The position numbers were made by a program, and so were the translations under genes. A stretch of 60,425 bases of DNA, counting the filler, from Basidiobolus meristosporus CBS 931.73 (taxonomy: Eukaryota > Fungi > Basidiobolomycota): the NCBI GenBank assembly GCA_002104905.1. It is 3 parts of 3 records of this genome, joined end to end, with 100 filler letters (N's around TTAATTAATTAA, not from the genome) between each part and the next. Parts side by side here need not be neighbours in the genome. Positions count along the whole stretch, not along the records: positions 1 to 21,322 come from MCFE01000991.1; 2 more parts are not named here. The stretch is one strand, 5' to 3'. The notes beneath the pieces were generated by a model. The model was not told the origin of the DNA, searched no databases, and saw only the letters and a program-made list of their open reading frames with translations. This document shows, in pieces, positions 5,489-21,322 of the stretch. Position 1 is the stretch's first letter, and each line of letters begins with the position of its first letter.

Positions 5489-5971
5489 TTAGGTGCAATT
5501 GTCAGCACAATGAGTGTATGGAATATTTTGTTCTTTTACGCATTGTATCTCTGTTACTAGGGTTGTGTACTGTACATCTTGGGTGGGCTGCATCAGAACG
5601 TAGGGAGAGAAAGAACTACAGTCATTTTGCTTGGCATATTCTAATGCGTTGCCCCGACCCTCCAGTTTAAGACTGGGCCCTGCTTGATACTTGACATTGA
5701 AGCCCTTATTGCTGTTGGCATTAGCAATGCTCAGGCTATCTTGCTTTCTGGTCACGGTGGTGAAACCCTGACGCAATAACGGGGATCGGACATTGGGTGT
5801 CTTAAAAACAGGCAAAACTCGAACGTTTTGGTGGTAATCGGTCGCATACTGTACACATGGTAAACTGCGATAATGAACCCTTCTATACTCGCGAGTGCAT
5901 GTAGAAGAACAGCCGATTAGGGCAGCAACGGCAACTTGATTCGCGGCAAGGCCTACAGTAATAAAGCGCAT
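5489..5971 (-). CDS. Putative secreted Cys-containing protein of unknown family (paralog of 8382-8609)
   Basis: Starts MRFITVGLAANQVAVAA. The first 55 aa align with the 8609 ORF (C..C.REYRR.H.RS.PC.Q...QNV.VLPV.K). About 160-aa open frame. Upstream flanks are also similar (about 6190-6230 vs 8865-8905). Confidence 0.55.
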   Translation of the reverse strand: MRFITVGLAANQVAVAALIGCSSTCTREYRRVHYRSLPCVQYATDYHQNVRVLPVFKTPNVRSPLLRQGFTTVTRKQDSLSIANANSNKGFNVKYQAGPSLKLEGRGNALEYAKQNDCSSFSPYVLMQPTQDVQYTTLVTEIQCVKEQNIPYTHCADNCT

Positions 5972-8381
5972 GTGGAGCGAATAACGTATTTGTGGGCTGT
6001 TGTATAGCATACAATATGGGTTAGCTGGGAAAATTGCTATTATATATTTCATGGATTAATCAGGTCATGACTCACACAATTATTATACTTTTTAAGTACC
6101 ATCGGTATTTTGCATTCCTTCACTCGTTATTTTTCAATTTTCTTCCATTATTTTGTGGAACTCACATGAATTTCTGGTATACTAGTGCTATCTAGTATCT
6201 TTGAAGTGCGACGAGCAGATCTCTTATACTTCATGCTGGCTGAGTGATGATAATTTGTGCAAGAGGAAGGAAGGCTGCATGACTGACTGGTGAAGTCATG
6301 CGGACTCTCCGATCCCACACGATTAGCTTTATGCGAGCTAGATTAATTTAAGCTCGCGTTTGCTACTTTACTTTATGTGAGACAGTGCATACACGAAATA
6401 GTAATCAGCATTTAATTTCAACCAAGTGCTTTATAGTATAAAGCTAGCAGTAGACAATGAGAATGTAGACTTAGGTCAAGAGGAGCGGCAAAAGAGGATG
6501 CCGGCTAAGAGGATATTTCTGAAAAGCATTTTGTCGTTAAGTGTTTCTAGAATGGTCACTCCTCTTTGGGCTTTATATTCGTATATGTGTATCTTCTTAG
6601 TTCCCACGACTATCAATCACTAAGTTTCAGGTCATACAACATGCAGGTACTGGCGACTTAATATTAAATTGGGAATCCACCTGTATCTGGTAATCCACCT
6701 GGAGGTTTGGTCTTTCAAGCGAAATACGCATGATTTGTCATATTTTTGTATTTCAGGTACATGCAACTGACTGACTACAATATCGTCAAGAAAAGTCACC
6801 CAATTATGAGTAATCGGATTATTATTTGCATTGATCCAAGCTGAAGGCTCACTTTTATTACATATAGATTATATTTTTCCACTTGAGCAAGTGTACATAT
6901 TTCTCCAGATAGACTTCGATACATTTGCTGTTGAGCAACTAGCTGATATTGAGCTAAGATTCTTTTTGAACAACTAGCGGATATTGCTTTGCTTTTTTGA
7001 GGATGGTTCTTGTTTGCACCCATAATTGCAATAATCCTTTGATTGGTCGTAAAGCTGGTTCAGTCGTTGATATAGAATGCCAAAGTACCTTTTTTAGCAA
7101 GGAAGGCCAGTAAGGCTAGGATGACTAGTTTTAAAGAATCTTCAACTACCACAATAGGTGCTAAGATATGTGGGCTTGCCGTTAATATTGAACAGTCCAG
7201 TTTATAAAGTAGCACTTTTCGCAGGTTAAATTCATAACTATGCAATCATAACCAACAGCAGTGGATTCGACGGGGTGGTATGAGAAGATGTTAGGGTAAT
7301 AATCGTTTCTACCGCTCCTCTCAATTCTATTCCTTTATTTGATTGTTTGCTTCGTATTTTTACCTTATTGTGAGTGTATGCGATTTGTCTTTTCTTTGTA
7401 CGCGTTGATGTCACTTAACATCGACTGACTCCTTACTTTGTATCAAGAACAAGCTGGTGAGGTCGCAGTCTCTTCGGAGGCTCATCACTTTTATTATATT
7501 CCGATTGCAGCAACCTTAAGAGGAGATGCTAACAGTCACTGAGCAGTCTGACAATCTCGAATACTTGTGGAACACTACCAGATGTTCTCTCTAATATCAA
7601 CCTTTTCGGTGGAGGGCAGCATTACTAAAGACTGGGGGTGAGTATTTTAGTACGTAAGTGAATATCTAATATTAACGCCCGCATCTCTGATTATGATACA
7701 GGTGCGTGCAAGTAAAATGCTAATCACAAGTAACAACAAGTATAAGAATGTCATTTGAATTTTATTGATTGAAAATTTTCATATAGATTATAGCATTTGG
7801 CCATGTTTTAGTTGTGAACATTATATCATAGATGCTATACTCCTCTCACTTGAGCTAAGATTCATGATTAAGTTCGAACAAAGTAAAGTTAACCTGACTA
7901 AATTAAAGAATCTTAACATGTAACTACTATCAGCAGCTAAAATTTATGGTCTTACTGTTAGGGTAGAACGCAGGAATTCGGTGCGCCAGATTTCCGAAAT
8001 AGGTACCAACATGAATGCCTGTATAACAGTCTAATTTATAAATATCAGTTTTCTCGAGCTGAACTCTTTACTACGCCATATCTCCTAGGTTTGTGCATTG
8101 ATCATATTATGACTAGCATCAGTGTCTTGAACGACCATTATTGACTACCCTGTATTGATATTACACATCAACTGTGAATAGCAATTCATTGACTTTAAGT
8201 TCAATTTAGCCTGCCAAACTCGGGATTTTGTGTGTATTGATGATCGTAAACTCAAACTGCCTTTTCTTCAAGATAAACAGACACTAATGGATAACAACAG
8301 AGGTAATAAGTAAACATACCACAAGAGCTTTACCTTTTCAAATGCTTAGCTCGAATACTAACGGCATTCAAGCGTATTTGA

Positions 8382-10894: not shown

Positions 10895-13196
10895 GGTCTG
10901 GCTGGTGTCTACGTTTCCGGGGGACTCTTAGAGATGTTGCTGTTAAGGATATTTAGCTGAAGCATTGTGAAGTAATAAACATTCCTTTGACCCAGCTGTG
11001 TTATGCTCATTGCACTGTGAGCATCTAACATATGTGTGAATTGCTACTTTGATTGTCTAAGTGTAGCGTGAAAGCAGAGTTTTGCCCGGCCATGCTTTTG
11101 ATCAGATATATGTGTACAACTGCCATGTATAGGCATCCGTTCCAGCAATCAGTATCGTGTCACACGCTCCGCACTTCTGAAGACAATCATTTTCTGTTGC
11201 GGTCAATATGATATGGCACCCCTGAGGTCTTTCAGGTACCTGGAGAGGTCTTCGCTTTTGCCTTTGTAGATGATATAGGCCGTATAAGCATTGGTTTCCG
11301 GTAACCTTGATTCCTTGGCTTTAGAAAAGGCATTGTTTAACTTCTGTTACTAAACAATTTGGATCTCAGCATATATCCCAAATAACCTTGAGACCGTTAT
11401 GCACCTATCAGCGGAACACCACTTTGAGTCTGTAGCATCTATGTAAGTGTTAAAGAAATCAACGTGTCTCCGCTGGTCTAAGGAGAAAAAATAGAGTATC
11501 TTGAACTCTTATTTCGAGTACTCCTATAAAATAAAGCATCTTGCAGCCATACAAGTATTTTGCTAGATGCTGAGCTCCGCAACCTTAGCTATTGTACCTA
11601 GAAAGAGCATGGCAAATTTGGTGAGTTGCCTACTGGTCCACACTTCAGGTGCAATATAGAGTGAAGCTTACAATATGTTTACCCACATTGACTTAAGCTA
11701 GAAATACAAAGTGCCAGCAATTGACTATATAGATAAAGTTGGAAATAATAAGCATTTGCTTTGCTCTTATATCACTCAAATACCTTATTACTCAACTTGG
11801 CTAAGTGTCTATTAGCAGTTTATGTATTTGGGAGTTTGCCTGCAGGTTAAGTGGCCTTAAAAAAAGGTCAAAAAATGGATTTTCTCCAACACAATGGGTG
11901 AGACACAGAGGCTACTTGGCATGTAAATGTAGAGCTATGTTACACATTCTGTGGCCAAGTAAAGGTCTGCTGTGCCCCTCTGGCACATGATGGCACTATT
12001 CGGCACTCATGGCTCAATGTGGCACTATTCAACGGAACAGGTCTATGATATGGATCTTTTGGTTTGGCTAAACTTACAATTTTCAATATCTCAGGTTCTA
12101 TTGTTTTTACAGACAAGGATAAATTCTTTCTCGGGGGTGAATAGGCTGAATAACCTTTCCACAAGATTTGGTAATATGCTATCGTGAAATTCACACTTAC
12201 TAGGTGTGTGACAAGTATTACTGTTGTCCAAGGTTGATGATTCTGTAAACAGAATAGGAGATTTTAAAGCGCTTCAGTTAAACCTTTTTCGAATAACTGT
12301 CACACAGATACAACACGCTTTACGATACAGTTGAAAGAAAAAGATGCGATATCGAAGAGAGTGTTATTGTAGAGTCAATGGCAACTACTTCAACGAGTAT
12401 TCTGGGTGTAATTTCCCGCTTAAAAGCTTGTCCAAGGTGTTTTTAGTCGCTGTACTTCTTGATAGACGTGCGGTGCTTGTGTGCAGAACGTGATTTTCTC
12501 TTGGACAGTTGTTCTTCAGATACCGGGAACGAAAACAGATATGTTTAATAAACGATATCCGAAACAATTGGAATGTTTGTACTTCACAACGCCTACACTG
12601 AATAATGAGCCTGCTACACGGGATACTCTACTATTTTGGGTTTATTTCCCAATTTGTCCAAGTTGCGAACCCGATTGAAAACCCAGTTTATACTCCGAAT
12701 ACGTGGTAAATGATGATCAGCAACTCAACCGCAGATTTTGATAAACTATTAAAATTCCAGATAGTCGGCCAATCAATAACAGGCAGCAAAATGTCGATGG
12801 ATCCTACCATACAAACTCCATCACAATCAAATAAACATACATTTACCTTGATTCCTTGATAAATCTGGCGAAGTCTTGCACATCAGGGTCACCAAGGATC
12901 AATCTCTAAGTGGGTGTCGCTGAATATGAGGGTTCCAACATTTGTGAAGTGTCAGGAGTAACCTTGTTCTGAGGTGAAGAACTCTGAGAGCCCAAATGCT
13001 TTAAGGGCAGCATATCTGTATGGTGAGGCAGGTAGATCTAGAGCCATAGAGTAGAGGCAATACACTGCGAACTTGGCCAACCTGGTATAGTCACTTTTAG
13101 ACTGAGGGTCAAGTTTGTAGTATCCGTATTAAGCCAACTTTTGTATTTAAAGAAATAAGGAAAGTATCAAGGAAGTTATGAGTTATTGGCAAATCA

Positions 13197-13275
13197 TTAG
13201 TGATTGATTTACAATGCACCGAGATCATTTTTGGTTAGTGATTGATTTACAATACACTGAGATCATTTTTGGTTA
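13197..13275. repeat. 38-bp tandem duplication upstream of the reductase gene
   Basis: ttagtgattgatttacaat(g/a)cac(c/t)gagatcatttttgg occurs twice. Confidence 0.9.
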
Positions 13276-13543
13276 CCTAAGAGAAATCCAAGACGTAGAG
13301 AAACCAAAAGTGGATGCTTACCTAAATGGGGTCAGACACCTGAATAGGGAGCTGCTGTTGATATAATGCCTATCTGGAGATGACCACCCTGGAGGACACC
13401 CTAACATTGCGACGATAATACATTCTAAAAATCAACGGTAATCCATTCTAGATATACCAAATTGCCTCAAATTATTAAGCGGTCCTTCATATAAATTGTC
13501 CCTGTCAACATCATATACATCAGGACGATTGAAAGAAGCAGAT

Positions 13544-15502
13544 ATGAGACACGTAATTATTGGAGGTGTAGCCGGTGGAGCCACAGCAGCCGCCCGGTTG
13601 AGAAGAGCAGATGAGTTGGCCAAGATCATTCTATTGGAGAAGGGGCCCCATATCTCTTACGCCAACTGTGGTTTGCCGTATTATATAGGCGGTGTCATTG
13701 TCGATCGTGCTAAGCTGCTGTTGCAGACCTCGCAATCGTTCGGCAAGCGTTTCCGTATTGACGTGCGGATACAGAGTGAGGTAACCGGCATTCATCCAGC
13801 GAATAAAACCCTGACAATCCGTAAGGCAAGCGGGGAAGAATACACAGAGAGCTATGACAAGCTTTTGTTGTCTCCCGGTGCCAATCCCGTCAAGCCACCT
13901 TTGGATGGTATCAACTCGGAAGGTATCTTTACACTACGCAATGTGGAAGATACGGACCATATCAAGGCCTATATCGCTGAGAAGCAGGTGAAGCGCGCCG
14001 TCGTTGTAGGAGCAGGATTTATCGGACTCGAGATGGCAGAGAGCTTACATCGTGCCGGTGTGGCCATTTCCGTAGTAGAGATGGGCAATCAAGTTATGGC
14101 ACCTATTGACTTTTCTATGGCTGCACATATTCATCAACACTTGACACAAAAAGGGGTATCTCTCTACCTTGAAGAAAGTGTGACGCACTTTCATCGCACA
14201 GAGAGCGGCCTGATCGTTTTCCTAAAGAGCGGGAATGCTATTCCGGCCGATATGGTGTTATTATCTATTGGCGTGCGTCCATCAACAGAATTGGCGCAGC
14301 AAGCAGGCTTGAGGTTAGGAGAGACGGGTGGCATCTGGGTGGATGAGCACTTGGAAACATCCCAAAAGGATATCTATGCAGTGGGTGATGCCATTGAATA
14401 TCCCCATCCGTTGACCAAGAAGCCGTGGCTCAATTACCTTGCCAATCCTGCCAATCGCCAAGGTCGAATTGTGGCTGATAACATGGTATTTGGTAATACT
14501 GTCTCTTATGAGGGAGCAATCGGCACTTCAATTGCCAAGGTATTTGACATGACCGTGGCATCTACGGGACTTGCAGCCAAGCGTCTGAAGCAACTGGGTA
14601 TGGAATACCAGAGCTCAGTAACTCACTCCTCCTCCCATGCTGGGTACTATCCGGGTGCTTTGCCCCTGACGTTAAAGTTGATTTACCACCCAACTACCGG
14701 TAAGCTTTATGGTGCACAATGTGTGGGTTACGAAGGTGTGGATAAGCGTATTGATCAGATAGCCGGACTCATTAAGCATGGCGGGACTGTATACAACCTG
14801 AAAGAAACAGAGCACTCCTATGCCCCTCCGTACTCATCTGCTAAAGATCCTATAGCTATCGGCGGTTATGTCGCTTGCAATATCATTGGTGGAGCCATGC
14901 CAGCTATTTCCTGGCGCGAACTTGTTGAAGAACAAGAGAAAGTGATGATAATTGATGTCCGCACTGTGGAGGAATATTCTTTCAGTTCCATTCCAGGTGC
15001 GATTAATATTCCCTTGGACGATTTACGAGAACATCTTGCCGAGATCCCGACAAATAAGCCGGTTGTCCTATACTGTATCATAGGACTGCGCGGATATCTT
15101 GCTCAGCGCATATTGATGGGGCGCGGATATCAGAATGTACGTAATTTGATCGGGGGTTATAAGACTTATTCCGCCAGCATTGCTCCGGTTCCCAAGCCAT
15201 TCCCTGTGCCTTCTTCCCAGTCAGCTGCTGCTTCAACAGAAACTCCTTCAATTGCCTTGAAGGTAAATCTTTGTGCTTTACAATGCCCTGGGCCTATCTT
15301 GCAGGTGAAGCAAGCGATGGATAAGATTGCTGTTGGTGAACGTGTGGAAATCATTGCTACTGACGCAGTTTTAGCTCGTGACGCTGCTGCATGGTGCGAT
15401 GCTACAGGAAACCAACTGATCGAGAAGCATGAAGAAAAAGGACGCTACACAATTATTCTTGAAAAGGTCGCACCTACTGTTATATCCAATTCAACGCTGT
15501 AA
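13544..15502 (+). CDS. cdr: CoA-disulfide/persulfide reductase (pyridine nucleotide-disulfide oxidoreductase) fused to rhodanese and TusA/SirA-like domains; bacterial type, intronless
   Basis: FAD motif VIIGGVAGG at the likely start (ATG 13544). Redox Cys in SYANCGLPY, NAD(P)H motif VVVGAGFIG, dimerisation-domain YAPPYSSAKD, rhodanese DVRT...YCIIGLRG, and TusA motif LQCPGP...ATD...AWC. Confidence 0.95.
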   Translation: MRHVIIGGVAGGATAAARLRRADELAKIILLEKGPHISYANCGLPYYIGGVIVDRAKLLLQTSQSFGKRFRIDVRIQSEVTGIHPANKTLTIRKASGEEYTESYDKLLLSPGANPVKPPLDGINSEGIFTLRNVEDTDHIKAYIAEKQVKRAVVVGAGFIGLEMAESLHRAGVAISVVEMGNQVMAPIDFSMAAHIHQHLTQKGVSLYLEESVTHFHRTESGLIVFLKSGNAIPADMVLLSIGVRPSTELAQQAGLRLGETGGIWVDEHLETSQKDIYAVGDAIEYPHPLTKKPWLNYLANPANRQGRIVADNMVFGNTVSYEGAIGTSIAKVFDMTVASTGLAAKRLKQLGMEYQSSVTHSSSHAGYYPGALPLTLKLIYHPTTGKLYGAQCVGYEGVDKRIDQIAGLIKHGGTVYNLKETEHSYAPPYSSAKDPIAIGGYVACNIIGGAMPAISWRELVEEQEKVMIIDVRTVEEYSFSSIPGAINIPLDDLREHLAEIPTNKPVVLYCIIGLRGYLAQRILMGRGYQNVRNLIGGYKTYSASIAPVPKPFPVPSSQSAAASTETPSIALKVNLCALQCPGPILQVKQAMDKIAVGERVEIIATDAVLARDAAAWCDATGNQLIEKHEEKGRYTIILEKVAPTVISNSTL

Positions 15503-15572
15503 ATAAACCATTCACTAGAACCTTATTTTTGCTCCCGCTTGCAACATGGAGCTATTTATTACGTGAAAAACC

Positions 15573-15660
15573 TTGTAAATCTAAGGATATATGCTAGTTC
15601 AATCGAACTGTTTACAACGTGAGTAATTTTGTAAATCTAAGGATATATGCTAGTTCAATC
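15573..15660. repeat. Two perfect 32-bp direct repeats in the shared 3' intergenic region
   Basis: ttgtaaatctaaggatatatgctagttcaatc at 15573-15604 and 15629-15660. Confidence 0.9.
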
Positions 15661-15719
15661 AAAAACTTCCTTTCCCACTATTTCTAAAATCAGAAGATAG
15701 CTTTACATATTTATTGCTA

Positions 15720-16531
15720 TTATGCATCATCCACCAACTTGAAACTTTCTCTTGATGATACCTTTGTTAGATACTGTTGTAGGTTAGGTCTTCCTGAGAA
15801 CACTACATCGCCTTTGATTGACTTTAGATGGACCAGTAATGGGATGACGTGGACGTCAGCAGCTGTATACTTCACCCCCACAATATAAGGCCCACTTTCT
15901 AACTGGTCCTCTAGCTGATCCAGGAACAATTCTGCCTTTCGCCATTCAGCTCTGTGGAGATCATATAGAGGCTGTGCTTGTTCAGGATACTTGTAGGCAA
16001 CTAGGAAAGAATTCGTCTGCTGTAGCTTCTCACGATAAAATGGTGTATTTTGTCGCTGAATGAACTTGGTCAAGGCTTTTACACGACCCTCAAAAAATCC
16101 TTCTACAAAGGCCCTCTTACGCTCCAGTTCAACAAAATCGGATGGAGAAAACACCAAGAGAAACCCATCAATATTGTGTTAATCCAGTGAGTAATAGTTG
16201 CCATATCACTGGTGGTGTATAACTCAGTTCCAGGATAGTTGGAGTCAAGATACTCGGTAATGGTAGTGGAATCCTCCAAAATCTGATTAGTATCTGTATT
16301 TACTAAGGTAGGGACAGTGGCATATTTGTTGATCCTAGCATAAATGGTTACATATGTGCAGCAGGCGGCAGCTACATTACTATCTTACCGAAGGTATGAA
16401 GGCGAAAAGTTTTCTCCAGCTGCCAGATTGACCTCAATCACCTCAATGTCCGTAATATTCTTTTCAGCCAAAGTAAGACGAACTGATCTTGGCCACAGCG
16501 CTTGCTTGAAGGAGTAGAACTTGACTGGCAT
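15720..16531 (-). CDS. Glutathione S-transferase (GST-N + GST-C), one intron, one apparent 1-nt frameshift
   Basis: Exon 1 16531-16389, intron 16388-16335 (GTAAGA..CTAG, 54 nt), exon 2. Motifs include VRLTLAEK, GENFSPSYLRIN..TVPTL, LEDSTTITEYLD and GPYIVG.KYTAADVH. The frame shifts near 16174 (AA where AAA restores TNIDGFLLVF). TATATA lies about 35-40 nt upstream. Confidence 0.9.
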
Positions 16532-17510
16532 ATTTTGAATATCGAGTTTTGCTGAGCGTTGATCTTATATAGAAGAGTAGGTGATATTTCTGTTAGATGG
16601 ATGCCAACAGCTATTGATTGGTGTACAACGTTTGGCTTACGGATTTCAACGATCGGAATGTTCATTGGACTGGAAACTGTTTACCACTTTGGGATTATCT
16701 TTGGTCCGTGCTCAGCTATGCCGCTTTTCCTGTTTTTTAAACTCTATGACTAGTATCACCCTGCTAATTCAATCTTACTGCCAAATTAGATTCTGCAGGT
16801 ATTGTGCCTAATAAAGTAATTCTTACAGTGATTGGTAAGCAATTTAATGTGATCAGTGGCATTTAAGCCTGTTACTGGCTCTTAATAACTGCCTCATCAA
16901 TATCAATATCTATACCAACACTTTTGAAAGCCAAGACTTGTGCAAGGTCAGTGCCAATAGTACTGCCAAATTGCAGATCAGTGACACCAATTGCATTCCA
17001 TATTACAAGTCAACAGCAACTTCATAATAGCCCACATTGTATGGGTTGATGTTATGACTGCATTATCACATGTTTTCTGCCCAGCTATTGATATTATAAT
17101 TTGGCAACAACATGAATAGATCCAATAAATTGTGCTGAAGACCCAAACAATAGAAAATCTGGACTTCCCTGTACACATTTAGGTAGAGCTAAGTGCAAGT
17201 GTTGCAAAAGTAGTTTACCAGCTCCTAAACATCCCATTAGCTCAAGCAGTAGTCTATGAGCTTTTCATCTCCTGACCAGTGCCTGCTATCATTGAATAAT
17301 CATATGAAAACCGCATAATCCATGCATGGATCAAATCAATCTCACTATCATCAAAAACTGAACATCACAAAAATTTCATCAACTGCTGCTACACCTTGTG
17401 AGCACACATATGGTCCATGCTGAGCTGATTTGTGATATATTCAAGAGAAATGTGTAACAAAATTCTTGAATGGTTTAACTAAATCAAAGGGACAACTAAG
17501 TTCAGAATTA

Positions 17511-19130
17511 TAAGGGGGGAGACAGTCACCAACAGGTGAAATCTTTCTTTCAGTAGAAACAAAGAAGTCAGCGCTACTGTTGTAGCTTTGATACAAGAGT
17601 GTGTAGCTGAGGGGAATTTGTAGGTAAGTTAATAAGAAGCGATGATAGTTCTTAAGTGCTCAACACACTGTTCAGTGGGAAGGGGGGTAGCAAGAGAGGT
17701 AAGAATGACCTGTGCACAACATTAATGAGGGGAATGTGATAAGGATTGATATTCATCATAAAGGGAGTGTGCTGCTGCAGATATTGCTGCCAAAGGTCTG
17801 TCAAGTACTTCAGGTAGGCCAGCTTGGGTTTTTCTGACTGCAGAATAAATTCAGCAAACTTCTTGACTTCAGGACCTCCAAGTATAGTTCTCCAGCAGGA
17901 GCCAAATGTAGTGTGGTGTGTTCACTTCCAGGCCTTAATCAGTGGGTTGTTGCAGTGGTGAAGTCTGAGATATAATCTGGCTCTAAGGTAGAGAAGTCTG
18001 ATCTTATAGGGCATAAACCCAAAAGCACCAAGAATAGCATGTCTGTAGGGGCATTCAGGCAAATGAGGCACCAAGGAGGTAATGCACCATACTGCAAACT
18101 TGTCAAGCTTAGTGCAGTCTCTAGAAGTAAGAGAGAGAAGTGGTAAGCCACATTCCAGGACAGGGAAGACAAACTGCTTGAGTAGAAGAAGGCAGCTGGG
18201 AGCTGAAGTTGTAGGAGGAGTAACAGCCAGTAGCTAGTGGAGTGCCTGTCTTGCCAGGAAAATTCTCTTCTTGGGATGTGCTCCAGAGTCTAGTCCAGCA
18301 GGAAGGAAAGGAAAGCCAAGATATGTAGCAAAAACCTGAGCAGGTAGAGTGGAGTTCTCCAAGTTGATGGGAGAGCCCAAAGGTACTATATTTGCAATGG
18401 AAAGCAGGAAATTACTCTTCTGCAGATACTGGTGGATGGTCTGGGAGTCTTGTTGCACATTGGAGGAGGATATTCTGATGTCATCAGCAAAGAGAGTAAC
18501 CAGGCAGTCAGCTGAGAGTCTTGGGAAATCATTCAGGAAGATGGCAAACAGTATAGGACCAAGCACAGTGCCTTGAACCACTCCATTAGGAACTGAGAAC
18601 ACTGGTGATTGCTCACTTGGGTGCAGAATTCTTGCTTGTGGATCCAGAAACAGGGACCTGACAAGGAGGGTGAGAGAGGTACTGGAGAAGCATTGCAACT
18701 TGGACCAAAGCAGATTTCTGTCAACTGAATCAAAGGCCTTAGTAATATCAAACAGAACTGAGGGATACTAGCACTGGAGAGAGTGATCTTGGCTAAGTAT
18801 GACTGCATATTCCAAGGAGAGGCCAGGAACAAAGCCAAACTGTGCAGGATGAAACTTGAGGGAGCCAGAGTAGAGCTCCTGAGCAAGCAGAAGCTCAAAC
18901 ACCTTTCTGCAGGTGGGCAGCAGAGATATTGGCCTGTAGGTGCTAGGATCCAGGTGCTTTCCTTTACCCTTGTACAGTGGCAGAACATTTGCAAAGGACC
19001 ATTCCTCAGGAGTAGAAAGCTGGGCTGAGCATTGCTGAAACAGTGGAAGCAGAAGTGCAGACATGGCCTTGGTACTAGTCCTCAGAAGCTCATAGGAGAT
19101 TGTGTCCACACCTGGAGCAGTAGAGTTGGG
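17511..19130 (-). mobile_element. 5'-truncated non-LTR (LINE-type) retrotransposon, telomere-proximal copy 1, pseudogenised
   Basis: Collinear with copy 2 over about 1620 bp. Premature TAG stops at two Lys codons (near 18770 and 18236) and a TAA near 17655. The 3' end is ...GACTGTCTCCCCCC with no poly(A). Confidence 0.92.
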
Positions 19131-19142
19131 TTAGGGTTAGGG
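19131..19142 (+). repeat. Two TTAGGG units exactly at the 5' truncation point of LINE copy 1
   Basis: Copy 2 continues gagttgggAAGCC (20888-20900), whereas copy 1 reads gagttgggTTAGGGTTAGGG. Confidence 0.9.
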
Positions 19143-19280: not shown

Positions 19281-21086
19281 GGGGGAGACAGTCACCAACA
19301 GGTGAAATCTTTATTTCAGTTGAAACAAAGAAGCCAGCGCTACTGTTGTAGCTTTGATACAAGAGTGTGTAGCTGAGGGGAAATTGTAGGTAAGTTAATA
19401 AGAAGTGATGATAGCTCTTCAGTGCTCAAGACACTGTTCAGTGGGAAGGGGGGTAGCAAGAGAGGTAAGAATGACTTGTGAACAACATTAATGAGGGGAA
19501 TGTGATAAGGATTGATATTCATCATAAAGGAGTGTGCTGCTGCAGATATTGCTGCCAAAGGTCTGTCAAGTACTTCAGGTAGGCCAGCTTGGGTTTTTCT
19601 GACTGCAGAATAAATTCAGCAAACTTCTTGACTTCAGGTTCTCCAAGTATAGTTCTCCAGCAGGAGCCAGGTGTTGTGTGATGTGTTCTCTTCCAGGCCT
19701 TAATCAGTGGGTTGTTGCAGTGGTGAAGTCTGAGATATAATCTGGTTCTAAGGTAGAGAAGTCTGATCTTATAGGGCATAAACCCAAAAGCACCAAGAAT
19801 AGCATGTCTGTAGGGGCATTCAGGCAAATGAGTCACCAAGGAGGTAATGCACCATACTGCAAACTTGTCAAGCTTAGTGCAGTCTCTAGAAGTAAGAGAG
19901 AGAAGTGGTAAGCCAAATTCCAGGACAGGGAAGACAAACTGCTTGAGTAGAAGAAGGCAGCTGGGAGCTGAAGTTGTAGGAGGAGTAACAGCCAGTAGCT
20001 TGTGGAGTGCCTGTCTTGCCAGGATAATTCTCTTCTTCAGGTGTGCTCCAGAGTCTAGTCCAGTAGGAAGGAAAGGAAAGCCAAGATATGTAGCAGAAAC
20101 CTGAGCAGGTAGAGTGGAGTTCTCCAAGTTGATGGAAGAGCCCAAAGGTACTGTCTTTGCAATGGAAAGCTGGAGATTATTCTTCTGCAGATACTGGTGG
20201 ATGGTCTGGGAGTCTTGTTGCACATTGGAGGAGGATATTCTGATGTCATCAGCAAAGAGAGTAACCAGGCAGTCAGCTGAGAGTCTTGGGAAGTCATTCA
20301 AGAAGATGGCAAACAGTATAGGACCAAGCACAGTGCCTTGAACCACTCCATTAGGAACTGAGAACACAGCTGATTGCTCACTTGGGTGCAGAATTCTTGC
20401 TTGTGGATCCAGAAACAGAGACCTGACAAGGAGGGTGAGAGAGGTACTGGAGAAGCATTGCAACTTGGACCAAAGCAGATTTCTGTCAACTGAATCAAAG
20501 GCCTTAGTAATATCAAACAGAACTGAGGGATACTTGCACTGGAGAGAGTGATCTTGGCTAAGTATGACTGCATATTCCAAGGAGAGGCCAGGAACAAAGC
20601 CAAACTGTGCAGGATGAAACTTGAGGGAGTTAGAGTAGAGCTCCTGAGCAAGCAGAAGCTCAAACACCTTTCTGCAGGTGGGCAGCAGAGATATTGGCCT
20701 GTAGGAGCTAGGATCCAGGTGCTTTCCTTTACCCTTGTACAGTGGCAGAACATTTGCAAAGGACCATTCCTCAGGAGTAGAAAGCTGGGCTGAGCATTGC
20801 TGAAACAGTGGAAGCAGAAGTGCAGACATGGCCTTGGTACTAGTCTTCAGAAGCTCATAGGAGATTGTGTCCACACCTGGAGCAGTAGAGTTGGGAAGCC
20901 TCTTGAGCACATTATGGATTCTCCTTTGATCAAGTGCAAGTGGGATGGGCAGAGTCTTGAAGTCAGGATGAAAGCCAGGAGTTGAGTACTGCTTTGTAGA
21001 GAAGAAGATGTTAGCCAGCTGTTCTGTTGAAGGTAACTTCCTGGAAGAGGGCCTCATTGCCCTGTAGAGTCTTGATACTGTTCTTG
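19277..21086 (-). mobile_element. 5'-truncated non-LTR (LINE-type) retrotransposon, telomere-distal copy 2, nearly intact
   Basis: Contains the RT ORF. The 3' end reads CCCCCCTAA on the sense strand. The 5' end is fused directly to the telomere array, with the frame open into it (CTA ACA AGA ACA GTA...). Confidence 0.95.
19522..21057 (-). CDS. Reverse transcriptase of LINE type; N-terminal endonuclease region absent by truncation
   Basis: Motifs APGVDTI, SYRPISLL, QFGF, DITKAFDSV, GVVQGTVLGPILF, LFADD and YLG. A 1-nt difference at 19529-19530 (GG vs GGG in copies 1 and 3) suggests the native ORF extends about 60 aa further, to about 19340. Confidence 0.95.
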   Translation of the reverse strand: MRPSSRKLPSTEQLANIFFSTKQYSTPGFHPDFKTLPIPLALDQRRIHNVLKRLPNSTAPGVDTISYELLKTSTKAMSALLLPLFQQCSAQLSTPEEWSFANVLPLYKGKGKHLDPSSYRPISLLPTCRKVFELLLAQELYSNSLKFHPAQFGFVPGLSLEYAVILSQDHSLQCKYPSVLFDITKAFDSVDRNLLWSKLQCFSSTSLTLLVRSLFLDPQARILHPSEQSAVFSVPNGVVQGTVLGPILFAIFLNDFPRLSADCLVTLFADDIRISSSNVQQDSQTIHQYLQKNNLQLSIAKTVPLGSSINLENSTLPAQVSATYLGFPFLPTGLDSGAHLKKRIILARQALHKLLAVTPPTTSAPSCLLLLKQFVFPVLEFGLPLLSLTSRDCTKLDKFAVWCITSLVTHLPECPYRHAILGAFGFMPYKIRLLYLRTRLYLRLHHCNNPLIKAWKRTHHTTPGSCWRTILGEPEVKKFAEFILQSEKPKLAYLKYLTDLWQQYLQQHTPL

Positions 21087-21322
21087 TTAGGGGTTAGGGT
21101 TAGGGTTAGGGTTAGGGTTAGGGTTAGGGTTAGGGTTAGGGTTAGGGTTAGGGTTAGGGTTAGGGTTAGGGTTAGGGTTAGGGTTAGGGTTAGGGTTAGG
21201 GTTAGGGTTAGGGTTAGGGTTAGGGTTAGGGTTAGGGTTAGGGTTAGGTTAGGGTTAGGGTTAGGGTTAGGGTTAGGGTTAGGGTTAGGGTTAGGGTTAG
21301 GGTTAGGGTTAGGTTAGGGTTA
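21087..21322 (+). repeat. Telomeric (TTAGGG)n array, about 39 units, at the contig end
   Basis: The G-rich strand runs 5'->3' to the contig end, as expected for a right chromosome end. A few TTAGG and TTAGGGG variants. Confidence 0.97.

Follow-up and report, generated by a model that had tools for sequence, protein, structure and literature searches.

A truncated and duplicated gene of Bacteroides origin for a CoADR-rhodanese-TusA protein in a subtelomere of Basidiobolus meristosporus

A gene for a three-domain protein of bacterial type is present close to a chromosome end of the gut fungus Basidiobolus meristosporus (strain CBS 931.73). The stretch of DNA that was analysed (the window; 60,425 nucleotides including filler; assembly GCA_002104905.1) joins parts of three records, the first of which (positions 1 to 21,322, from MCFE01000991.1) carries an open reading frame (ORF) that combines a CoA-disulfide reductase (CoADR) module with a rhodanese and a TusA domain (Table 1). 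The gene derives from Bacteroides, is integrated in the fungal genome, has been truncated and duplicated, and is maintained by selection. It lies about 5.6 kb from the chromosome end, tail-to-tail with a gene for a glutathione S-transferase (GST), followed by two retroelement copies and a terminal TTAGGG array, so that the term subtelomere, used in an original prediction made from the sequence alone, is right.

The open frame comprises 652 codons and a TAA, with the ATG at 13544 and the stop codon at 15500–15502 (ORF list, translation). There is no in-frame ATG between the preceding stop and 13544, and no intron; family scans of the flanks bear out the earlier description of an intronless ORF without bacterial operon neighbours. 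Pfam recognises Pyr_redox_2, Pyr_redox, Pyr_redox_dim, Rhodanese, and TusA domains in the 652-aa protein. The FAD-binding Rossmann motif (GxGxxG) is present as GGVAGG (residues 7–12), the NAD(P)H motif as GAGFIG (residues 156–161), and the redox motif as SYANCGLPYY, which includes Cys42, is aligned with SFANCGLPYY of a solved enzyme of Bacillus anthracis (3ICR), and is invariant across all relatives. The CxxGxR loop of the rhodanese domain reads CIIGLR with Cys511 (CQLGMR in 3ICR), and the CPxP motif of the TusA domain that follows reads CPGP with Cys581; the three sulfur-carrying cysteines that had been named (in SYANCG, CIIGLR, and CPGP) are all retained. The second strand of the NAD(P)H-binding fold ends in Glu179, which we take to suggest a preference for NADH. 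A linker of about 27 residues, unconserved and probably flexible, separates rhodanese from TusA. Nothing points to a targeting peptide, because the N-terminus begins directly at the Rossmann fold.

Table 1. Coordinates of the transferred gene and of the features that surround it, in positions of the window. Omega (dN/dS) is that between the two fungal copies, with the value for a pair of Bacteroides genes in brackets.
Feature	Position	Strand	Evidence
Candidate TATA box TATAAATT, 47–54 nt upstream of the ATG	13490..13497	+	Read from sequence
Complete intronless coding sequence of the Bacteroides-derived CoADR-rhodanese-TusA protein	13544..15502	+	ORF list; translation; Pfam; 78–83% identity to Basidiobolus and Bacteroides proteins
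Flavoprotein module, aa 1–445: FAD motif, Cys42, NAD(P)H motif, dimerisation domain	13544..14878	+	Pfam Pyr_redox_2 6e-62 (residues 2–285), Pyr_redox 4.6e-16, Pyr_redox_dim 1.2e-13 (residues 331–432); alignment to 3ICR; motifs; omega 0.052 (0.023)
Rhodanese domain, aa 446–545, loop C511-I-I-G-L-R	14879..15178	+	Pfam Rhodanese 6e-18 (residues 463–544); Cys511 aligns with rhodanese Cys of B. anthracis CoADR-RHD; omega 0.085 (0.033)
Pro/Ser/Ala-rich linker, aa 546–572, poorly conserved	15179..15259	+	26% aa identity between fungal copies; alignment; omega 0.47 (0.46)
TusA domain, aa 573–641, Cys581 in CPGP	15260..15466	+	Pfam TusA 5.5e-17 (residues 573–641); alignment with 1PAV and with TusA of E. 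coli (3LVJ); omega 0.158 (0.020)
Fungus-specific 11-residue tail and stop; bacterial homology ends, DsrE of about 165 aa continues in bacteria	15467..15502	+	tblastn end 15475; nucleotide homology to paralogue ends 15465; alignment
Candidate poly(A) signal AATAAA, overlapping the stop codon	15502..15507	+	Sequence; cDNA-like X3 record 22 (15300–15523) ends 16 nt downstream, at 15523
GST gene, tail-to-tail with the coding sequence	15720..16531	-	GST_C 1.5e-9
GST exon 1	16388..16531	-	Matches GST_N positions 1–47
GST intron, 54 nt, canonical GT..AG, splits the N-terminal domain	16334..16387	-	Frames; X3 contig skips exactly these positions
GST exon 2	from 16333	-	Matches GST_N_3 positions 42–74
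Proximal, decayed LINE-like retroelement copy, reverse transcriptase broken into three ORFs	17515..19110	-	blastn to family of the distal copy and to the B. meristosporus paralogue locus (86–93%); RVT_1 fragments
Internal remnant of telomere repeats, flanked by the two retroelement copies	19125..19142	+	Pattern search; sequence
Distal retroelement copy with intact 511-aa reverse transcriptase ORF (19522–21057), antisense to telomeric G-strand	19281..21057	-	RVT_1 3.4e-25; nearest solved relatives LINE-1 ORF2 reverse transcriptases, 3.6e-13
Telomere array that closes the piece (about 40 TTAGGG copies)	21086..21322	+	Pattern search

The closest matches to solved structures all extend over residues 3–544, at about 50% identity, and comprise CoADR-RHD of B. 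anthracis (3ICR, 5e-172), Npsr of Shewanella loihica (3NTA, 1.5e-152), and CoA-persulfide reductase (CoAPR) of Enterococcus faecalis (8A56, 1.2e-148); Cys42 and Cys511 align with the two catalytic cysteines of these enzymes. At the level of sequence, the protein has every feature by which the CoADR-rhodanese family is recognised. The B. anthracis enzyme (3ICR/3ICS/3ICT), which stems from a Firmicute, has its redox and rhodanese cysteines in register with those of the fungal protein but lacks the TusA domain, which in the fungal protein aligns with TusA sulfur carriers. CoAPR and Npsr share the two-cysteine architecture (C42 and C508 in CoAPR) but also lack TusA, and CoAPR is under the control of CstR in a cst-like operon, whereas the fungal gene is accompanied by no such regulator or operon.

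The origin of the gene among Bacteroides is evident from the database search and the trees. The protein shares 78–82% amino acid identity with Bacteroides proteins of 811–824 aa, and in a database of 5.8 billion proteins there is no bacterial protein with an identity above 82%. The second-best match, which is the closest eukaryotic protein, is encoded by B. meristosporus CBS 931.73 itself (P0002; 643 aa, 83% identity, full coverage); except for the top-scoring match, all others at the top of the list are the Bacteroides proteins of 811–824 aa. In a quick maximum-likelihood tree (81 rows), the two B. meristosporus proteins cluster together (SH-aLRT 99) deep within Bacteroides. A careful tree of 36 rows, with Tannerella, Alistipes, and Odoribacter as the root, recovers the fungal pair as monophyletic (100/99; UFboot/SH-aLRT) and as sister to a trio of B. 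fluxus (96/66), within an 11-row Bacteroides clade (93/88) that is itself embedded in a clade of Bacteroidaceae and Prevotellaceae (100/100); the pair falls outside five bacterial clades, each of them separately supported. This pattern is that expected of a single transfer from within the genus Bacteroides to the fungus. A horizontal origin from Bacteroidota is strongly supported, with the donor lineage in the group of B. fluxus, GD17, and B. muris. A Bacteroidetes-type origin with nesting by BLASTP and phylogeny, as originally predicted, is borne out by both. The top-scoring match (P0001, 961 aa, from an ENA contig) is of the Bacteroides type, with about 100 residues duplicated internally and a long extension at the N-terminus. 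Being a bacterial protein whose duplication is probably an artefact of assembly or gene calling, it was rejected as a closer relative.

Such a transfer has an ecological and a genomic context. Basidiobolus lives in the guts of amphibians and reptiles beside abundant Bacteroidota (PMC10964425), and bacterial transfers reportedly make up 2–5% of its gene models, the majority without introns and of fungal-like GC content (PMC7466969). The GC content of the gene (0.484) exceeds that of the flanks (0.39–0.41) and equals the mean of fungal coding sequences in that study (0.4865; PMC7466969). The criteria of Tabima et al. 2020 (PMC7466969) for horizontal gene transfer are best matches and phylogeny, fungal genes on the same scaffold, and a read depth equal to that of the scaffold. 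Best matches and phylogenetic nesting are both bacterial, and the scaffold carries a spliced GST gene, retroelements shared with another B. meristosporus locus, and a TTAGGG telomere, all of them downstream of the gene.

The fungal gene is a truncated version of its bacterial counterpart. The four-domain CoADR-Rhodanese-TusA-DsrE proteins of Bacteroides, annotated as 'FAD-dependent oxidoreductase' (B. fluxus YIT 12057, L004; Bacteroides sp. GD17, L005; P0003), resemble the window protein in the three N-terminal modules and the catalytic motifs, with the stated 78–82% identity over residues 1–644, but continue into a C-terminal DsrE/DrsE_2 domain and are encoded next to a MarR-family regulator, whereas in the fungal gene, which stands in eukaryotic surroundings, both are absent and a new tail of 11 residues is present. 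All 80 proteins in a set of named bacterial relatives have a length of 805–832 aa and end in DsrE, so the claim that the longer form is typical of Bacteroides and Parabacteroides holds for Bacteroides; the donor is not Parabacteroides. Homology to Bacteroides extends from Met1 to about residue 644 (nucleotide 15475), and the nucleotide homology between the two fungal loci that involves the gene is confined to 13536–15465. The ends of the two fungal proteins are no more than a few residues apart and fall in the TusA/DsrE linker, where the bacterial proteins continue into about 165 aa of DsrE. The predicted loss of the DsrE-like part is confirmed: the window protein stops 11 residues after TusA, and a tblastn search with the Bacteroides DsrE part found no remnant in the window (best E = 1.2). 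Nor was a split-off DsrE gene found in eukaryotes, as the best 120 matches of a DsrE-only search, in which a length filter excluded full-length fusions and copies below about 72% identity lie outside the listing, are all bacterial or metagenomic. The Bacteroides gene is followed by the small MarR-family regulator (in L005 and L011) and lies outside any larger sulfur operon; the window has no co-directional MarR-family gene immediately downstream of the coding sequence, where the convergent, spliced GST gene is located instead.

Because both fungal copies share the truncation, the loss of DsrE predates their split, and a single truncated acquisition followed by duplication would be the parsimonious history. 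Two TusA substitutions, A576L/V and F610L, are also common to the copies, and 79 bacterial sequences show no variation at these positions. Since shorter prokaryotic Rhodanese + TusA forms exist (e.g., a 709-aa Bacteroidota cluster in the Atlas), the three-domain layout is not new as such but arose here by truncation. The original prediction considered this architecture unfamiliar from fungi; the nearest Atlas families indeed include no eukaryotic cluster, but a paralogue with the same truncation is annotated in the same strain.

The paralogue (P0002, 'pyridine nucleotide-disulfide oxidoreductase') is encoded on a 195-kb scaffold (MCFE01000056.1; locus L001), about 16 kb from its end. It agrees with the window gene in its truncated layout, its common origin, and the absence of introns, but differs at the sequence level (83% protein and 79% nucleotide identity), in a slower dN, and in its flanks, which are unrelated apart from a repeat family. 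Retroelement copies of the family seen in the window and a remnant of TTAGGG repeats lie next to it; together with the proximity to a scaffold end, this makes both copies look subtelomeric. The partial retroelement copies are located at 15708–17088 of the locus, about 4 kb downstream of the paralogue, with a TTAGGGTTAGGG remnant (15958–15969) between them. About 5 kb downstream of the paralogue is a gene with a Protoglobin domain (17213–17575, 120 aa), which may be another transferred gene, because protoglobins are mainly prokaryotic.

Public runs (X1–X4) were examined as contigs, and all depths given are contig k-mer depths. Two versions of the gene are present in a single sample (X1 = X2), one about 99% identical to the window (depth 539–558) and one about 80% identical (depth 417–455), which is the divergence seen against the annotated B. 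meristosporus gene. Both versions recur in run X3, and X4 contains a single copy of about 84% identity. The coexistence of both versions in single samples (X1/X2/X3) is seen over window positions 13651–15186. The presence of both in one sample makes the window gene and P0002 paralogues (or homeologues) rather than orthologues.

Selection was assessed from dN, dS, and omega between the window gene and its paralogue, with a Bacteroides pair for comparison. The fungal copies differ by a dN of 0.097 and a dS of 1.15, which corresponds to a dN/dS of 0.084. At such a dS, the transfer is not recent, and the low dN/dS implies that selection has long been active inside the fungus. The omega values (Table 1) indicate that all three domains are still constrained and that purifying selection is strong on both copies. 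TusA is the most relaxed domain, by about 8-fold relative to the Bacteroides pair, as the loss of DsrE might lead one to expect, although with 69 codons the estimate is weak. The window copy retains 231 of the 239 near-invariant bacterial columns. Its branch in the careful tree is longer than that of the paralogue (0.29 vs 0.13), and the residue that follows the rhodanese cysteine (A512I) differs from 79 bacterial sequences.

The runs also bear on integration and expression. In X1, which is possibly the source sample, the contigs of the gene have a depth of 539–558 as compared with 577 for the GST contig, in terms of contig depth rather than read mapping. A contig of X3 (record 22, 15300–15523) spans the point at which bacterial homology ends and continues through the fungus-specific tail into the 3' flank. 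Between 12000 and 17500, X3 covers only 13.5–15.5 kb and 15.75–16.6 kb and no intergenic DNA, and its window-like contigs are 98–99% identical to the window. With its genic-only cover, the missing GST intron, and the contig end at 15523, X3 behaves like cDNA and is probably a transcriptome, which would indicate that both paralogues are transcribed. In this run, the version of about 80% identity has about 7–9 times the contig depth of the window-like version. No run recorded as RNA contains the stretch. One of the X3 contigs begins with Illumina adapter sequence at 15751.

The characterised homologs suggest what the protein may do. In the mechanism proposed for these enzymes, a surface cysteine of the rhodanese domain accepts sulfane sulfur, which the swinging pantetheine arm of bound CoA then moves across a tunnel about 25 Å long to the FAD-adjacent cysteine of the other protomer, where NAD(P)H drives the release of H2S (PMC9405070; PMC7969121). 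They favour persulfides and polysulfides over disulfides, and the E. faecalis enzyme guards the CoA pool from over-persulfidation (PMC9405070; PMC7969121). The fungal protein is likely to catalyse a NAD(P)H-dependent reduction of CoA persulfide or polysulfide, judging from its sequence; tightly bound CoA is predicted from the homology to 3ICR, 3NTA, and 8A56, and the tethered TusA domain may act as sulfur donor or acceptor for the rhodanese cysteine. The persulfide relay independent of glutathione that was originally proposed is likewise a prediction from homology.

Quite probably, the best explanation overall is that of an integrated, truncated, duplicated, and selected Bacteroides gene that encodes an enzyme of the CoADR-rhodanese (Npsr / CoA-persulfide reductase) family. 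On this reading, it is a genuine chromosomal gene of Basidiobolus that was acquired once from gut Bacteroides. The piece that became established begins with the start codon of the bacterial gene and stops in the linker behind TusA, without DsrE and the downstream MarR regulator, and the truncated gene was then duplicated to yield at least two subtelomeric paralogues (the window copy and the annotated copy of B. meristosporus), both under strong purifying selection. Its product would be, by homology, a dimeric FAD enzyme that takes up sulfane sulfur as a persulfide on Cys511, possibly delivered by Cys581 of the tethered TusA. The pantetheine arm of tightly bound CoA would carry the sulfur to Cys42 beside FAD, where NAD(P)H would reduce it to H2S. 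A more far-reaching proposal, which we put forward tentatively and rate at somewhat less than even chances, is that of an active CoA-persulfide/polysulfide reductase in a eukaryote that clears reactive sulfur in a sulfide-rich gut, with TusA re-wired to a fungal sulfur acceptor or donor after the loss of DsrE. The re-wiring would explain both the two shared TusA substitutions and the 8-fold relaxed but real constraint on this domain.

Several observations argue against a bacterial contaminant or a chimeric assembly join. Although the ORF is intronless and very similar to Bacteroides, has a higher GC content than its flanks (0.48 vs 0.39–0.41), and has a 5' junction that no listed contig bridges, a fungal protein (83%) is closer to it than any bacterial protein (none above 82%). 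The same truncation is found in the copy on the 195-kb scaffold, the copies group together in spite of a dS of 1.15, and family scans of the 21-kb piece, which ends in a eukaryotic telomere, detected no other bacterial-type gene. Together with the match in contig depth to the neighbouring GST gene and the 3' boundary bridged in X3, this makes contamination or misassembly scarcely credible. A neutral relic of a transfer that is still open by chance and without function in the fungus would fit a subtelomere with decayed retroelements and an adjoining GST gene with a possible frameshift, as well as the longer branch of the window copy (0.29 vs 0.13), but is very improbable in view of a 652-codon frame that stayed open over more than one synonymous change per site at a dN/dS of 0.08, the preservation of 231 of 239 invariant positions and all motifs, and the existence of cDNA-like contigs. 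Two separate transfers from related Bacteroides might account for the large divergence of the copies (79% nucleotide identity) and for flanks that lack homology apart from the repeat family; this, too, is hardly tenable, because the copies are monophyletic (100/99), their 5' and 3' homology boundaries are the same within a few nucleotides, and A576L/V and F610L are shared at positions invariant in 79 bacterial sequences.

By contrast, an alternative that concerns only the function carries more weight, although we consider it unlikely: the gene may be integrated and selected for another job, either as a CoA-disulfide reductase or NADH oxidase in redox balance or oxygen tolerance, or in a TusA-based mobilisation of sulfane sulfur for biosynthesis (thiolation, cofactor sulfur). 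The same fold family comprises CoA-disulfide reductases, NADH oxidases, and NADH peroxidases; TusA proteins carry sulfur in biosynthetic relays (3LVJ is TusA with IscS), and the TusA domain is kept under selection (omega 0.16). However, the best matches are rhodanese-fused, the characterised ones among them reduce persulfides and polysulfides and have little or no disulfide activity (PMC7969121; PMC9405070), and both relay cysteines of the persulfide chemistry are conserved.

Several points weigh against a selected persulfide reductase at this locus. The dN of the window copy is about 1.8 times that of the paralogue (0.058 vs 0.033), and the window copy has changed beside both relay cysteines (A512I in the rhodanese domain, G578A in TusA); it could be the less important or the diverging copy. 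Among the contigs listed, none reaches across the 5' junction at 13544 (the runs being seen as contigs), X1/X2 may be the sample behind the assembly of the window and hence provide no independent support, and X3 is recorded as 'DNA?'; its cDNA nature is a reading of ours. Catalytic activity, substrate (CoA persulfide, polysulfide, other persulfides, or CoA disulfide), and benefit (protection of the CoA/thiol pool in a sulfide-rich gut) are predicted rather than observed. Moreover, fungi depend on glutathione, and a role of CoA persulfide as a relevant stress in Basidiobolus would be conjectural.

With these points considered, the Bacteroides-derived gene still represents a clean and well-bounded case of a gut fungus that domesticated a bacterial gene, with the donor narrowed to a clade within Bacteroides. 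It is a clear but not unprecedented transfer from bacteria to fungi: the case is new in detail, whereas bacterial gene transfer into Basidiobolus has been documented genome-wide (PMC7466969) and the paralogue is already annotated in GenBank. A literature search found no paper that links Basidiobolus to a CoADR-rhodanese enzyme, and a survey of gene transfer in 44 fungi and a preprint on 19 genomes are silent on the gene. If the enzyme is active, Basidiobolus would possess a CoA-based persulfide reductase that is otherwise known from bacteria and archaea, the first such case in a eukaryote as far as found in the literature, which would bear on the sulfide tolerance of eukaryotic microbes in animal guts. 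The natural loss of DsrE also provides a ready-made experiment on the role of the TusA-DsrE extension of Bacteroides, which is uncharacterised as far as found in the literature.

The surroundings of the gene are those of a fungal subtelomere. The GST gene lies 218 bp downstream of the coding sequence. Its reading frame changes near 16160–16175 (minus strand), between the end of the N-terminal domain and the GST_C ORF (15720–16157). A frameshift (pseudogene or assembly indel) may account for the change, or else a second intron of very short length; the contig of X3 runs unbroken across it, but with 7 gap letters. The two retroelement copies stand in tandem, antisense to the TTAGGG strand, and share 86–93% nucleotide identity with the element in the locus of the paralogue. 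Both begin with an identical GGGGGGAGACAGTCACC sequence, and the 511-aa reverse transcriptase ORF has only about 33 residues before the reverse transcriptase domain, without an obvious endonuclease. The element looks like a telomere-targeting or telomere-healing non-LTR (long terminal repeat) element; an endonuclease-deficient Penelope-like element was rejected, as the nearest solved relatives are LINE-1 ORF2 reverse transcriptases and not TERT.

No tRNA was found in the window, and the 13.5 kb upstream of the transferred gene contain no gene recognisable by Pfam; the largest ORF in this region (5489–6052, minus strand, 187 aa) has no family match. Since neither inverted repeats nor target-site-like repeats bracket the gene, nothing suggests that it was carried on a DNA transposon. 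The only repeats beside it are two local tandem duplications, 2 x 38 nt upstream (13197–13272) and 2 x 56 nt downstream (15546–15657), which are mutually unrelated; contig depth is raised at both, and the sequences may recur elsewhere in the genome. Farther upstream, positions 12000–12183 of the window represent a very high-copy short repeat: contig depth in X1/X2 rises there to about 190,000, as against about 1,000 in other places, and loose ends are numerous at 12002 and 12045.

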